Positions 13,289 through 45,873 of a DNA stretch of 64,000 nt are shown in pieces. Every line of letters begins with the position of its first letter. The stretch's first letter is position 1. Location: sequence record MK250021.1; one strand, 5' to 3'. The notes under the pieces are model-generated. The model ran no database searches. It saw only the letters and a list, made by a program, of their open reading frames with translations, and had not been told where the DNA came from. Position numbers and translations under genes: made by a program.

Positions 13289-14011
13289 ATGAATACTTAT
13301 GATTTTACAGATCCATTTGATTATGAAGAATATATGAAATTATTGAATAATTTCTTAGGTCCATCAGTTGAAGAGAAAAATAATATTATATGTAATTCTC
13401 ATTTTACACTACACCCAGTTAATTCTGATACTTATAATAAGTTTAAGGAATATCTTGAATATGAATATGATAAGAATACTTGTTTTTTTATGCATATTTG
13501 TATTGATGGAAAAATTATAAATGATTCTGTTTATTTTTGTAGATTCGATTCTTATGATTATTTATATTCAAAGATAAAGGATTATAATAAGAAGAAACAT
13601 TATTTTGAATTTTTCACTAAATGTGATATAGCGTCATATACAAAAGAAGAAGTTGATAAGTATAATGATGAATATGAGCGTTATCATTATAGAGGAAAAA
13701 AACGAAAGGTTGGTGAGAAATATTTAAAGAAAACAGATGTTATTGTTAATCTTAAATCAGGTAAAGAAGTATCGTTTATTGAAATACCTAAGTATAATAG
13801 AGGATATATTGTATATGAGAAATATTATTCACCAAATGGTGAATATAAAATTATTTCTTTAGAAACAGGTAGAATAATTGAATATGATTATGGTGATAAA
13901 ATTGAAACAGATAATCATGTAATATTTAAAGCGAAACGTAATGATTATAATGATCCTGTTAAAGCTATAGTTCTAGATAAAAGTACAGGTGATTTTATTT
14001 ATATTGATTAA
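13289..14011 (+). CDS. hypothetical protein
   Basis: 240-aa ORF. Confidence 0.7.
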   Translation: MNTYDFTDPFDYEEYMKLLNNFLGPSVEEKNNIICNSHFTLHPVNSDTYNKFKEYLEYEYDKNTCFFMHICIDGKIINDSVYFCRFDSYDYLYSKIKDYNKKKHYFEFFTKCDIASYTKEEVDKYNDEYERYHYRGKKRKVGEKYLKKTDVIVNLKSGKEVSFIEIPKYNRGYIVYEKYYSPNGEYKIISLETGRIIEYDYGDKIETDNHVIFKAKRNDYNDPVKAIVLDKSTGDFIYID

Positions 14012-14025
14012 ATTATAATAAAATT

Positions 14026-14514
14026 ATGTTAGTATTTCATGGTAGTTCACAACGAATAGATTATATTGATATAGATAAATGTCATTTAGGTTGGCATTGC
14101 GGAAATATTTGTCAAGCAATAGATATTACAGACCCTAAAAGACATAATGATAAATTTGATTGGGAAACTACATATATTTATGTATCTGATATATATCCAA
14201 CGCATGATAATACAATTTATATAGAAGATAAATTTAGATATTCTGATAATTTTTTAGATGATATTATTACAGAACTATCAAATAAGTTAATATCAGAATT
14301 TCCTAATATATCATTAAATGATTTATATACATGTGAGTCTGAAAGAGATGTTAGAGACTTCTTACTTTATAATAATATAAAATATATTGCATATGAAAAT
14401 TTAATAGAAAGTAGAGGATTNNNNNNNNNNNNNNNNNNNNNNGGTGAAATAGATAATATACAAGAATATACATTTTATGATTTTTTAACAATAAATTTAA
14501 ATGCTAAAATTTAA
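14026..14514 (+). CDS. hypothetical protein, possible ADP-ribosyltransferase-like fold
   Basis: N-terminal VFHGS...G.H.G...QA and C-terminal Y.N..E pattern; contains an N gap. Confidence 0.4.
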   Translation: MLVFHGSSQRIDYIDIDKCHLGWHCGNICQAIDITDPKRHNDKFDWETTYIYVSDIYPTHDNTIYIEDKFRYSDNFLDDIITELSNKLISEFPNISLNDLYTCESERDVRDFLLYNNIKYIAYENLIESRGXXXXXXXXGEIDNIQEYTFYDFLTINLNAKI

Positions 14515-14731
14515 GAAACAACATAAACATTTCTTTATAACTAAATATAAATCTATGTTTTGTATAGAAGATATTATAAAAATAGCTCGTTATGATGATA
14601 ATTGTACAGGAGGAAAAATATATAAAGCAAGATTAAATGGAATAAATGAAGATTATGATTTTAATATTGATCCAGATGATCAAGAACGATTAGTAAAATA
14701 TATTAAGCAGTTAGGATATGATAAAATTTAA
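14501..14731 (+). CDS. hypothetical protein
   Basis: 76-aa ORF. Confidence 0.6.
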   Translation: MLKFKKQHKHFFITKYKSMFCIEDIIKIARYDDNCTGGKIYKARLNGINEDYDFNIDPDDQERLVKYIKQLGYDKI

Positions 14732-15380
14732 TTTTGATAATAAAGGAGTTTCTATTAGTTCTAAAGATATGAAGGAATTTCAGGAGAATGTAATGACAGT
14801 AGAAGATATTGTTAATAGACTTTTGAAGTTTTATTCAAAGGATAAGACATATATGGGTGAACAGAAACAAATGCTTNNNNNNNNNNNNNNNNNNNNNNNN
14901 NNNNNNNNNNNNNNNNNNNNNNNNNNNNNNNNNNNNNNNNNNNNNNNNNNNNNNNNNNNAGCAGATAATAAATTGCATAAACTTATTATGTGGCGTGATG
15001 ATAACGGTCTTCATAATTTTGCAATGTGGATTAAGAATGAAGATATGCTTGGAGGTAAGCTTGTGAAGATTTATCCAGAAGATGATGATATTTTTACAAA
15101 GAATCAAATGGAAGGTGCAATGTATCTTGCAGAAATTAATAAGATACCATATTTTGAAGGATGTGATGAACATGCGGATAATTATGTATATCAAACAAAG
15201 TTGAAGGAACTTGATGATGAAATTGAAAATATCAAGAATCAACGAACATCTTGTAAGAACGAAATGAAATCTATTCAAGATAGATATGCTGAACTTCTTA
15301 CATATTATGCAAAGATGAAAGTAAAGCAAGTTAAATTGCAAATTGAAAGAGAAACATTAGTTAATAAACATAAGAAGTAA
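14718..15380 (+). CDS. hypothetical protein with C-terminal coiled coil (contains an N gap)
   Basis: Frame is continuous across the gap. Confidence 0.6.
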   Translation: MIKFNFDNKGVSISSKDMKEFQENVMTVEDIVNRLLKFYSKDKTYMGEQKQMLXXXXXXXXXXXXXXXXXXXXXXXXXXXXADNKLHKLIMWRDDNGLHNFAMWIKNEDMLGGKLVKIYPEDDDIFTKNQMEGAMYLAEINKIPYFEGCDEHADNYVYQTKLKELDDEIENIKNQRTSCKNEMKSIQDRYAELLTYYAKMKVKQVKLQIERETLVNKHKK

Positions 15381-15385
15381 TAGAA

Positions 15386-16080
15386 NNNNNNNNNNNNNNN
15401 NNNNNNNNNNNNNNNNNNNNNNNNNNNNNNNNNNNNNNNNNNNNNNNNNNNNNNNNNNNNNNNNNNNNNNNNNNNNNNNNNNNNNNNNNNNNNNNNNNNN
15501 NNNNNNNNNNNNNNNNNNNNNNNNNNNNNNNNNNNNNNNNNNNNNNNNNNNNNNNNNNNNNNNNNNNNNNNNNNNNNNNNNNNNNNNNNNNNNNNNNNNN
15601 NNNNNNNNNNNNNNNNNNNNNNNNNNNNNNNNNNNNNNNNNNNNNNNNNNNNNNNNNNNNNNNNNNNNNNNNNNNNNNNNNNNNNNNNNNNNNNNNNNNN
15701 NNNNNNNNNNNNNNNNNNNNNNNNNNNNNNNNNNNNNNNNNNNNNNNNNNNNNNNNNNNNNNNNNNNNNNNNNNNNNNNNNNNNNNNNNNNNNNNNNNNN
15801 NNNNNNNNNNNNNNNNNNNNNNNNNNNNNNNNNNNNNNNNNNNNNNNNNNNNNNNNNNNNNNNNNNNNNNNNNNNNNNNNNNNNNNNNNNNNNNNNNNNN
15901 NNNNNNNNNNNNNNNNNNNNNNNNNNNNNNNNNNNNNNNNNNNNNNNNNNNNNNNNNNNNNNNNNNNNNNNNNNNNNNNNNNNNNNNNNNNNNNNNNNNN
16001 NNNNNNNNNNNNNNNNNNNNNNNNNNNNNNNNNNNNNNNNNNNNNNNNNNNNNNNNNNNNNNNNNNNNNNNNNNNNNNNN
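15386..16080. other. assembly gap (N run)
   Basis: About 695 N bases. Confidence 0.99.
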
Positions 16081-43720: not shown

Positions 43721-43928
43721 ATATATAAATTATTTGATTAAACAAATTAATGAAAAATTAAAAATAATTTATTAAAATGTAGACAATATCAAATAAATAA
43801 CATATAAATAATATAATAATTAAAAACAAACGCTTATTTGATTTTCGTAGCGTTATGGATAAGTTGATAGAATTCAGAAATTCCTTTTAAGACGAATACA
43901 CATGGAATGGTCCATTGGTGGAATTGGT

Positions 43929-44237
43929 AAAGTGTTTGCCTGCATTAATTTGTAGAATCCATCAAATTCAGTATCAGTTAGGATTAAATTTTAAATATTA
44001 GTAGTTGCTATTGACGAAAATATTGACAATAATTAATTTATTGTTACCTGAGGAATAAGTGTTTATTTAATAAACAACGAAGAAGCTGACTAAGAAAACC
44101 TAAGGTCTTCATAAGAAGATAGCTTGGTAATACTGAGCCAAGATAATTTTTAATTATAAGGTGCAGAGACTATACGGTGGGAACTAATAGCAAGTTAAGA
44201 TATAGTCCAAACTTTATAGAAATATAAAGAGTTTTTG
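43929..44237 (+). ncRNA. group I intron 1 (309 nt) in the tRNA D-loop
   Basis: Exon ends in U, intron ends in G; P1 GGT|AAA pairs TTTGCC with U-G at the splice site; P10 GTGTTT pairs 3' exon AGACAC; P3 CCATC/GGTGG; P7 GACTA(44168)/TAGTC(44203); S element AAGATATAGTCC. Confidence 0.88.
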
Positions 44238-44252
44238 AGACACGAGGGACTT

Positions 44253-44600
44253 AAAAAATTTGAGTGCTCTATTGAGAAATCATAGAAGTAGAATCTCCCT
44301 AACGAAACGGAAGCCTAATTATTGGTGACAATAATGGTGGTGACGAACTCACTAAGTTGTTATAGAACGTTAATCTATATTAAATGTAAATTGAAGTGTT
44401 ACAGCATAAATAGCGAAGAGACTATAGAGGAGATACCTAAGTTAAAGTACACGAAGAATAATCAATTAGATTATCACTATATATGAAGAGTATATAGTTT
44501 TATAATAAGGAATGCGCATTACTTTAATATGGTAGTAAAATAGTCCAGACTACAACATCTTAATAATTAAGATGGCTTGTATTAAAGCAAGAGTAGTAAG
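44253..44600 (+). ncRNA. group I intron 2 (348 nt) in the anticodon (U^AA)
   Basis: P1 ACTT|AAA pairs TTTGAGT with U-G at the splice site; P3 ATCTCC(44293)/GGAGAT(44429); P7 GACTA(44420)/TAGTC(44541); terminal G 44600. Confidence 0.9.
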
Positions 44601-44656
44601 AAAATCCCTTGGGCAGAAATGCCCGTGCCGGTTCGAATCCGGCATGGACTACATAT

Positions 44657-44700
44657 AAAAGTCTGATAATCAATAGCTTAGATTATCAGACTTTTATTTT
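44657..44700 (+). terminator. intrinsic terminator after the tRNA
   Basis: AAAAGTCTGATAATC/GATTATCAGACTTTT 15-bp perfect stem followed by a T-run. Confidence 0.85.
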
Positions 44701-44736: not shown

Positions 44737-45873
44737 ATGATTACAATTACAGAACAATATATAAAAGAGTACCAAAAGAAATTAGATGATATTTCTAAAT
44801 CATTTGATTTAGAGAAACAACATATTATAGTTGAAGAATTATCAATTAAAGTTTCTGCACCAGATTTTTGGGATGATTTTGAAAGTGCGACATCAATCAC
44901 AAAAGAACTTAATACAGCAAAAGAAAAGATAGATGATGTTGAACATATGAAAATGCTTATTGATGAGTTATCAACTGCATTAATGTATTATAAGGAATTT
45001 GAAGGTAAAGATGAAGAAGAATATATAAATCTAGCGAATTCTGAATTAATTAGTGAATTCAGTAAATTTGAGGATAAGTATAGATTTGTTGATCCTACAG
45101 ATTCATTAGGAGCTGTATTAGACATTAATGCAGGTGCAGGAGGAACAGAAGCAAATGATTGGGCAAATATGTTATTCCGTATGTATGAGATGTGGGCAAA
45201 ATCAAATAATTATAAGTTTAAAGTTTTATATTATTCAGAAGGGGATAAAGTAGGTATTAAAAATGTATCTATTGAAATTACTGGTAATAATGCGTATGGA
45301 ACATTAAAAGGTGAAACCGGTGTTCATAGAATGGTAAGGGTTTCACCATATAATGCACAAGGTAAACGTATGACTAGTTTTGCTGCAGTTTCTGTTGTGC
45401 CTTTAGTAGATAATTCTATCAAGGTTGAAATTGACGATTCTAAATTAACAATAGATACATTTAGATCTTCTGGTGCTGGTGGTCAAAATGTAAATAAGGT
45501 AGAATCTGGTGTACGTGTAAATTATATGTATACAGATCCAGATACAGGTGAAACAGAAAAAATTCAAGTTGCAAATACAGAAACAAGAGATCAACCAAAG
45601 AATAAAGAAAGAGCAATGCAAATTCTTAAATCTATTCTTTATAAGAAAGCATTGGATAAACAATTAGCTAAGAAAAAAGAAATAGAAGATGCAAAACTTA
45701 AAAATGAATGGGGTGCACAAATTAGATCTTATGTATTTGATGATAAGCGAGTAAAAGATCATCGTACAGGTTATCAAACAACTGATGTTGATTCTGTTAT
45801 GAATGGAAATATAAATGGTTTTATAGAATCATATAATAATTGGATTATTGAGCAAGAAAATAATAGACTTTAA
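44737..45873 (+). CDS. prfB: peptide chain release factor 2
   Basis: P.FWDD, GAGGTEANDWA.ML.RMY, GE.GVHRMVRVSPY...R.TSFA (SPF/SPY specificity motif), SGAGGQNVNKVES, WG.QIRSYV; single continuous ORF with no TAG. Confidence 0.96.
   Translation: MITITEQYIKEYQKKLDDISKSFDLEKQHIIVEELSIKVSAPDFWDDFESATSITKELNTAKEKIDDVEHMKMLIDELSTALMYYKEFEGKDEEEYINLANSELISEFSKFEDKYRFVDPTDSLGAVLDINAGAGGTEANDWANMLFRMYEMWAKSNNYKFKVLYYSEGDKVGIKNVSIEITGNNAYGTLKGETGVHRMVRVSPYNAQGKRMTSFAAVSVVPLVDNSIKVEIDDSKLTIDTFRSSGAGGQNVNKVESGVRVNYMYTDPDTGETEKIQVANTETRDQPKNKERAMQILKSILYKKALDKQLAKKKEIEDAKLKNEWGAQIRSYVFDDKRVKDHRTGYQTTDVDSVMNGNINGFIESYNNWIIEQENNRL

Follow-up and report, generated by a model that had tools for sequence, protein, structure and literature searches.

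A leucine tRNA gene of Lak megaphages interrupted by two group I-type introns, one of them in the D-loop

Introduction

How does a giant gut phage read its most used leucine codons when no matching tRNA gene is annotated? In the long ORFs of the analysed window (64 kb of Prevotella megaphage Lak-B, MK250021.1, GC content about 26%), TTA accounts for 56% and TTG for 15% of the leucine codons, and TTA is the 8th commonest codon. The published Lak tRNA table lists an 86-nt Leu-TAA gene only for Lak-A1 and A2 and none for C1 or B1 to B9 (PMC6784885, Table S2B); the only leucine gene listed for Lak-B is Leu-AAG. ARAGORN detects no tRNA in the window, and Rfam at gathering thresholds finds neither a tRNA nor an intron. 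An initial annotation of the sequence had proposed a tRNA-Leu(UAA) cut into three exons by two self-splicing group I introns, one in the D-loop. The analysis confirmed the gene, and its coordinates are exact.

Gene structure and insertion sites

The gene spans 743 nt and comprises the following parts, all on the + strand:

43909..43928 (+), exon 1: acceptor 5' strand, U8 G9, D-stem 5' strand and D-loop through G18 G19 U20.
43929..44237 (+), intron 1: 309 nt, IC3-type group I, without ORF.
43974..44089 (+), peripheral insertion of about 116 nt inside intron 1, between the P4 5' strand and J4/5, closed by UCAG/CUGA.
44238..44252 (+), exon 2: 15 nt with the end of the D-loop, D-stem 3' strand, position 26, anticodon stem 5' strand and C32 U33 U34; bases 1-6 form P10 of intron 1 and bases 12-15 form P1 of intron 2.
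44253..44600 (+), intron 2: 348 nt, group I by topology, without ORF.
44601..44651 (+), exon 3: A35 A36 of the anticodon, the rest of the anticodon arm, long variable arm, T arm, acceptor 3' strand and discriminator A, without encoded CCA.
44655..44697 (+), a 17-bp hairpin followed by a U run, the likely intrinsic terminator of the tRNA transcription unit.

The joined exons (20 + 15 + 51 nt) yield an 86-nt sequence which ARAGORN calls tRNA-Leu(taa), a class II tRNA with a 7-bp acceptor stem, G18 G19 in the D arm, a long variable arm and discriminator A73. The acceptor 5' strand pairs with 44644-44650. A natural control was provided by Lak-A1, which has an uninterrupted 86-nt tRNA-Leu(TAA) at the syntenic place (L006, the Lak-A1 locus, 1138-1223; 52 bits with the Rfam tRNA model). 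It lies behind the same upstream sequence as in the window and aligns without a gap to the joined exons. Hence, the inserts are real insertions, at GGT|AGAC in the D-loop and at CTT|AAAA in the anticodon loop. From sequence alone, the junctions are ambiguous by 1 nt for intron 1 and by up to 4 nt for intron 2 (an A run); the group I rule (U before the 5' splice site, G as last intron base) selects the boundaries given above. The initial annotation described a perfect cloverleaf. The only blemish is a G1.U72 wobble in this strain; two other Lak-B contigs have G1-C72.

The split gene is not an assembly artefact. It occurs in Lak-B1 to B9, Lak-C1, four IMG/VR contigs and two metagenome contigs. 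The 851 bases around the gene are 100% identical in Lak-B1, B2, B5 and B9, 99.8-99.9% in the other Lak-B genomes and 92.4% in Lak-C1. The two metagenome contigs were obtained with an intron 1-specific motif, which also matched by chance one unrelated intron with an HNH endonuclease ORF. Exact-pattern scans of IMG/VR found no allele with only one of the two introns.

The terminator hairpin has a predicted fold of −20.3 kcal/mol (z −7.3 against shuffles). It was missed by a simple terminator scan because its loop is 9 nt; the one hit of that scan (44123-44142) is P4'/P6 of intron 1. A class I release factor gene with PCRF and RF-1 domains starts 85 nt downstream of the tRNA gene.

Selection on the tRNA

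Lak-B and Lak-C1 both carry both inserts, yet their acceptor stems differ: G.U G-C U-A C-G C-G A-U U-A in Lak-B and G.U G-C C-G G-C A-U G-C G-C in Lak-C1. The five acceptor pairs 3-7 are changed on both sides, and all stay Watson-Crick across 743 nt. One variable-arm pair is also compensated (G-C to A-U), and one T-stem pair becomes G.U. Lak-A1 has a third fully paired acceptor stem. The split gene is thus under selection as a tRNA, which is not expected of a dead gene and implies that the inserts are removed from the RNA, although splicing itself is inferred. No second tRNA-Leu(UAA) was seen among the Rfam tRNA hits of Lak-B1 that were examined: of five long hits (83-127 nt), ARAGORN called three (Cys, Tyr, Trp) and made no call on two.

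Intron 1

A short-range Rfam search matched RF00028 over 44055-44229 with 40.5 bits (E 1.1e-8), below the gathering score of 50. The alignment captures P5, P6, the AGAGACUAUACGG and AAGAUAUAGUCC motifs and a terminal GAAA hairpin, but loses P3 and P4 where the 116-nt insertion lies. Compact relatives score 53-68 bits. A search of four whole Lak genomes with RF00028 returned nothing, not even this locus; the stricter filters used for long records lose it, and the result is uninformative about other introns. The missing strands were located by hand further upstream, and a script confirmed that every helix is fully paired:

43932-43940 (+), guide, with the P10 part at 43932-37 and the P1 part at 43938-40.
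43941-44/43951-54 (+), P2.
43958-63/44176-81 (+), P3, UCCAUC with GGUGGG.
43964-66 (+), J3/4, AAA.
43967-73/44131-37 (+), P4, UUCAGUA with UACUGAG.
44099-104/44123-27 (+), P5, and 44106-10/44115-19, P5a.
44138-39/44160-61 (+), P6, and 44143-48/44152-57, P6a.
44168-74/44201-07 (+), P7.
44182-85/44193-96 (+), P8.
44212-18/44223-29 (+), P9 with a GAAA loop.
44237 (+), terminal G.

This order is also seen in compact relatives such as L126, an IC3 intron in the anticodon loop of a viral tRNA-Thr (65 bits). The P1, P10, P3, P7 and terminal G proposed in the initial annotation are all present. The guide GCC pairs with G18 G19 U20, with U43928.G43938 at the splice site, and the adjoining GUGUUU pairs with AGACAC of exon 2. 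P1 has only 3 exon base pairs, and the hexamer AUUGGU occurs twice in exon 1, so a cryptic site exists. P3 differs in sequence yet stays paired among three relatives, read by eye: UCCAUC/GGUGGG here, GGAAUC/GGUUCC in L126 and CAUCC/GGAUG in another relative, L127. The 3' half of the core is 70-78% identical to viral tRNA-Leu introns that pass the Rfam threshold. More distant relatives are located in phage nrdD and dnaE genes beside homing endonucleases.

The 116-nt insertion next to J4/5 is unusual. It is absent from compact relatives such as L126, and its internal fold is only a prediction. Six of the seven differences between Lak-B and Lak-C1 in intron 1 fall within the insertion and the seventh in the P6a loop; the core is invariant.

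Intron 2

Intron 2 has no RF00028 match at E up to 10 in the window, and its relatives have none at E up to 0.01 or at the gathering score. Its assignment rests on topology and on comparison with relatives. The following elements were identified, and the helices are fully paired:

44249-52/44262-65 (+), P1, with U44252.G44262 at the 5' splice site.
44259-61/44601-03 (+), P10.
44268-72/44282-86 (+), P2.
44293-98/44429-34 (+), P3.
44299-44417 (+), P4-P6 region, only partly assigned.
44420-25/44540-45 (+), P7.
44435-37/44531-33 plus 44442-49/44520-27 (+), P8.
44549-53/44593-97 (+), P9 closing helix.
44557-63/44567-73 (+), P9a, and 44576-79/44588-91, P9b.
44600 (+), terminal G.

A motif scan of IMG/VR returned 55 loci. 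Most are in phage tRNA genes, and many of those are tRNA-Leu(UAA) split at the same U34|A35. Other hosts are tRNAs with the anticodons CAU, UCU and UUU and the primase gene of crAss-like phages. Covariation of P1, P2, P7 and P9 was observed across 34 unique relatives. The guide changes with the host exon: GAG with CUU, GUG with CAU and GGA with UCU. P2 occurs as 13 different, fully complementary stems. P7 has three or four pair sets (GACUAU/AUAGUC, GACUG/CAGUC or ACUUU/AAAGU), and the P9 closing helix is ACCAC/GUGGU or, as here, ACUAC/GUAGU. P3 was fixed by the search pattern and contributes no covariation.

The splice rule was validated independently. Removal of a 563-nt relative from cr116_1 at U|...G| fuses two annotated primase fragments into one ORF of 342 amino acids. 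Group I introns in crAss-like primase genes are published (PMC7886860). The sister subfamily shows a canonical P3-UAA-P4-P5-P4'-P6 order, and the first 44 nt of intron 2 (P1-P2-P3) are about 85% identical to Rfam-positive IC3 introns of viral tRNA-Leu(UAA) genes. Intron 2 is therefore an expanded, diverged relative of the classical tRNA-Leu(UAA) intron lineage. The two introns are not similar to each other beyond the shared 10-nt core motifs. Neither has an ORF over 62 amino acids, and the upstream ORFs have no Pfam match.

Splicing model and alternatives

The evidence is best explained by a working tRNA-Leu(UAA) gene of Lak-B and Lak-C that is interrupted by two unrelated group I introns (probability about 0.8). 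In this model, a precursor of about 760 nt ends at the hairpin. Each intron folds separately because exon 2 gives different bases to each. A free guanosine attacks intron 1 at the U43928.G43938 splice site, P10 forms, and the exons are joined after G44237. Intron 2 does the same at U34|A35, with GAGU pairing to ACUU and UUU pairing to AAA. The joined RNA folds as a class II tRNA-Leu, is trimmed, given CCA and charged, and reads UUA/UUG, about 70% of the leucine codons. That splicing happens, that it needs no protein, and any order of the two reactions are inferred from sequence and comparative evidence. Assembled contigs from four RNA or possibly RNA libraries (three on record as RNA) cover Lak-C1-like unspliced exon-intron junctions and many relatives of intron 2 with different peripheral inserts, but show no 43928>44238 or 44252>44601 joint. 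This neither supports nor refutes splicing, since contigs cannot show absence and such libraries rarely capture mature tRNA.

Removal of the introns may depend on a host or phage protein, such as a maturase-like or chaperone factor, or only one of the two may be autonomous; tRNA output would then depend on that factor. The short P1 and the insertion in intron 1, the weak or absent covariance model scores and very AU-rich helices, which may be unstable alone, point in this direction. However, compact IC3 tRNA introns also use 3-bp P1 helices, as L126 does with CUU/GAG, the Azoarcus tRNA intron probably splices alone with a P1 of this length, and no maturase or endonuclease ORF lies in or beside the introns. 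Protein dependence is possible but unlikely. Even less likely is a gene inactivated by insertion of intron 1 at a site where it cannot splice, or by decay of either intron, with the phage relying on host tRNA. The lack of spliced RNA in the contigs, the absence of a precedent for the D-loop site in the literature searched and the sub-threshold scores would fit. But the compensated stem pairs between two intron-bearing lineages are not expected in a pseudogene, the catalytic cores, P1 and P10 are intact and identical in both lineages, the gene keeps its terminator, and it serves the most used leucine codons.

The introns are most simply selfish mobile elements. Intron 2 comes from a family widespread in gut-phage tRNA anticodon loops, and intron 1 has an IC3 core, of the kind found in those loops, that has settled at a new site. 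Between Lak-B and Lak-C1, the block from the D-stem to the anticodon stem, introns included, is far better conserved (97.7% and 93.4% for the introns) than the distal exon parts (81% over all exons) or the flanks. Lak-B/C share the anticodon stem AGGGA/UCCCU with other intron-bearing phage tRNA-Leu genes, whereas Lak-A has CUAGA/UCUCG. This fits spread by recombination with short co-conversion tracts, though selection on the ribozymes could give the same picture. The initial annotation suggested that double splicing could gate tRNA supply or shield the precursor from host anticodon nucleases. Such an adaptation is very doubtful. Only circumstantial observations favour it, namely the intron conservation and the proximity to a release factor gene in a recoded phage, and Lak-A manages with an uninterrupted gene at the same place.

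Occurrence of introns outside the anticodon loop

The initial annotation considered a D-loop group I intron, and two such introns in one tRNA, unusual. This holds, whereas the anticodon-loop intron is not unusual: of 112 unique IC3-motif loci from a partial IMG/VR scan, about 70 sit in tRNA anticodon loops, mostly Leu-UAA. ARAGORN calls span the motif in 72 loci. Three of these are the Lak locus, mis-parsed as tRNA-Leu(gag) with a 640-649-nt intron; all the others inspected have an intact 5' half with the intron in the anticodon loop. None of the 40 remaining loci had a convincing split tRNA in this crude screen; L293 is an anticodon-loop case with a poor acceptor stem and L236 a 3' tRNA fragment. 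Literature searches, which did not cover most subscription journals, found no D-loop or D-arm group I intron, no tRNA with two group I introns and nothing relevant on Lak tRNA-Leu introns.

The D-loop intron shows that the anticodon-loop site rule is not absolute, and it offers a natural substrate for asking how a ribozyme and a tRNA body fold around each other at a different junction. Two independent group I introns flanking a 15-nt exon are an extreme architecture for so small an RNA. A missing and probably important tRNA is restored to the published Lak-B and Lak-C genomes, and tRNA inventories of large phages are undercounted when introns lie outside the anticodon loop or come in pairs. 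It is conceivable, though unlikely on present evidence, that the D-loop intron is the first visible member of a hidden class of multiply split phage tRNA genes, with guides pairing to the universally conserved G18 G19 and the D-stem. Inventories and the code predictions built on them for recoded megaphages would then be systematically incomplete, and Lak might additionally use the two splicing steps to time the tRNA-Leu(UAA) supply or to shield the tRNA.

Comparison with known systems

The cyanobacterial and plastid tRNA-Leu(UAA) intron (subgroup IC3, e.g., Anabaena) resides in the same tRNA and, for intron 2, at the same insertion point, with a short P1 that uses the anticodon loop. Intron 2 is expanded and diverged enough to escape RF00028. 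Intron 1 shares the IC3 core sequence (J3/4 AAA, P4, CCAAG at P6, AGAGACUAUACGG, AAGAUAUAGUCC) but sits in the D-loop. In Lak-B and Lak-C, two introns lie in one gene of a phage genome.

The tRNA-Ile(CAU) intron of Azoarcus and other bacterial tRNA group I introns (tRNA-fMet, tRNA-Arg) are likewise small, ORF-less IC3 ribozymes with a 3-bp exon part of P1, a P10 and GAAA tetraloops, of which intron 1 has one in P9. All cases described in two reviews lie in the anticodon loop (PMC4033280, PMC8450103), whereas intron 1 uses G18 G19 U20 and the D-stem 3' strand as P1 and P10 partners.

Intron 2 is about 80% identical over its core to the intron that splits the primase gene of cr116_1 and IAS virus, where the target is the same short sequence, ACUU|AAAAU (Yutin et al. 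2021, PMC7886860). Those introns interrupt protein genes. The tRNA-hosted members of the family and its failure to match Rfam, which matters for the annotation of gut viromes, are not described in the papers searched.

Archaeal tRNAs with several introns at non-canonical positions and the plastid trnG-UCC group II intron in the D-stem are probably precedents for tRNA genes interrupted outside the anticodon loop and more than once (PMC4033280). Their mechanisms differ, with a protein endonuclease acting at bulge-helix-bulge motifs and group II splicing, respectively; neither is group I.

Within the same phage group, enigmatic tRNA introns were reported that are also missed by bacterial-mode finders (Devoto et al. 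2019, PMC6784885). These were found with eukaryote-mode tRNAscan-SE, and that study stated that phage tRNA introns had not been reported before. It lists only one intron, in tRNA-Tyr, for Lak-B. The enigmatic introns are 79-114 nt long, sit one base 3' of the anticodon, contain tRNA-like hairpins, have no Rfam match and are of unknown type. The introns of the tRNA-Leu(UAA) gene differ in length, position and sequence. Relative to the literature searched, what is new is the D-loop site and the pair of introns, not a phage tRNA intron as such.

Sequence context of the tRNA-Leu(UAA) gene

A phage-encoded class I peptide release factor of 378 aa with PCRF and RF-1 domains starts 85 nt downstream of the tRNA. 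The phage has 171 in-frame TAG codons in the long ORFs of the window. The strain has a T at position 44650, giving a G1.U72 wobble in the acceptor stem. Contigs L181 and L124, which are otherwise identical, have C at this position, giving G1-C72, while Lak-C1 and Lak-A1 also have G1.U72. The GC content is about 0.26 but falls to 0.158 in one segment. The features of the window are:

44650, T, giving G1.U72 in the tRNA
44737-45873, class I peptide release factor (PCRF and RF-1 domains, 378 aa)
14001-16000, segment with a GC content of 0.158

One contig from an RNA library (run X8) joins a Lak-C1-type tRNA 3' end plus TAAAAG to the middle of intron 2, with the joint leading from 44636 back to 44413. 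It may be an assembly-graph artefact or another locus.

Compact group I introns in viral tRNA genes

Compact IC3 group I introns, with 53-68 Rfam bits where tested, are common in anticodon loops of tRNA genes on viral contigs (IMG/VR loci, e.g., L217, L299, L241 and L276). They often lie within long tRNA arrays, two of which also hold a tmRNA gene. The hosts are mostly Leu-UAA, but also Arg-UCU, Lys, Thr, Met, Ser, Ala and Pro. ARAGORN mislabels many of them, for example as 'Tyr(ata)' or 'Phe(gaa)', because it puts the intron in the wrong register.

On the 179-kb IMG/VR contig L236, at about 700-1110 of the oriented region, an IC3 intron sits in what looks like only the 3' two-thirds of a tRNA-Lys(UUU). 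It lies directly after an intact intronless tRNA-Lys(UUU) and an ORF that, judged by reading the translation rather than by a search, resembles a DUF559-like endonuclease. The arrangement could be a relic of intron-associated duplication.

Relatives of intron 2

tRNA-Arg(UCU) genes host the intron-2 family either after U34 with the guide GAG or after U36 with the guide GGA (loci L134, L158 and L179 versus L168 and L132). The family shifts its insertion point within one loop by changing three guide bases.

Lak-A and Lak-C1 carry a relative of intron 2 in an odd 62-nt tRNA-like gene. The gene has the acceptor AGCUUAG/CUAAGCU and a good T arm, but no D arm. After intron removal, it is called only by the mitochondrial mode of ARAGORN, as Asn(att). 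A convincing P1 pairing could not be found, so the 5' splice site is uncertain. The loci are:

L003 about 1113-1540, Lak-A1 (525.9-526.3 kb)
L005, Lak-A2
490376-490395, Lak-C1

Several relatives of intron 2 carry a tRNA-like module inside their P9 insertion, which scores 33-34 bits with Rfam tRNA. This is a tRNA-like element inside an intron inside a tRNA-Leu gene. The modules lie in the P9 region of the following loci, with L142, L150, L156 and L165 as further cases:

L144 2078-2182
L172 115-219 (-)

Many other members have T-arm-like hairpins (GGTTCGAATCC) in peripheral P6 or P9 insertions. The published short Lak introns contain similar hairpins.
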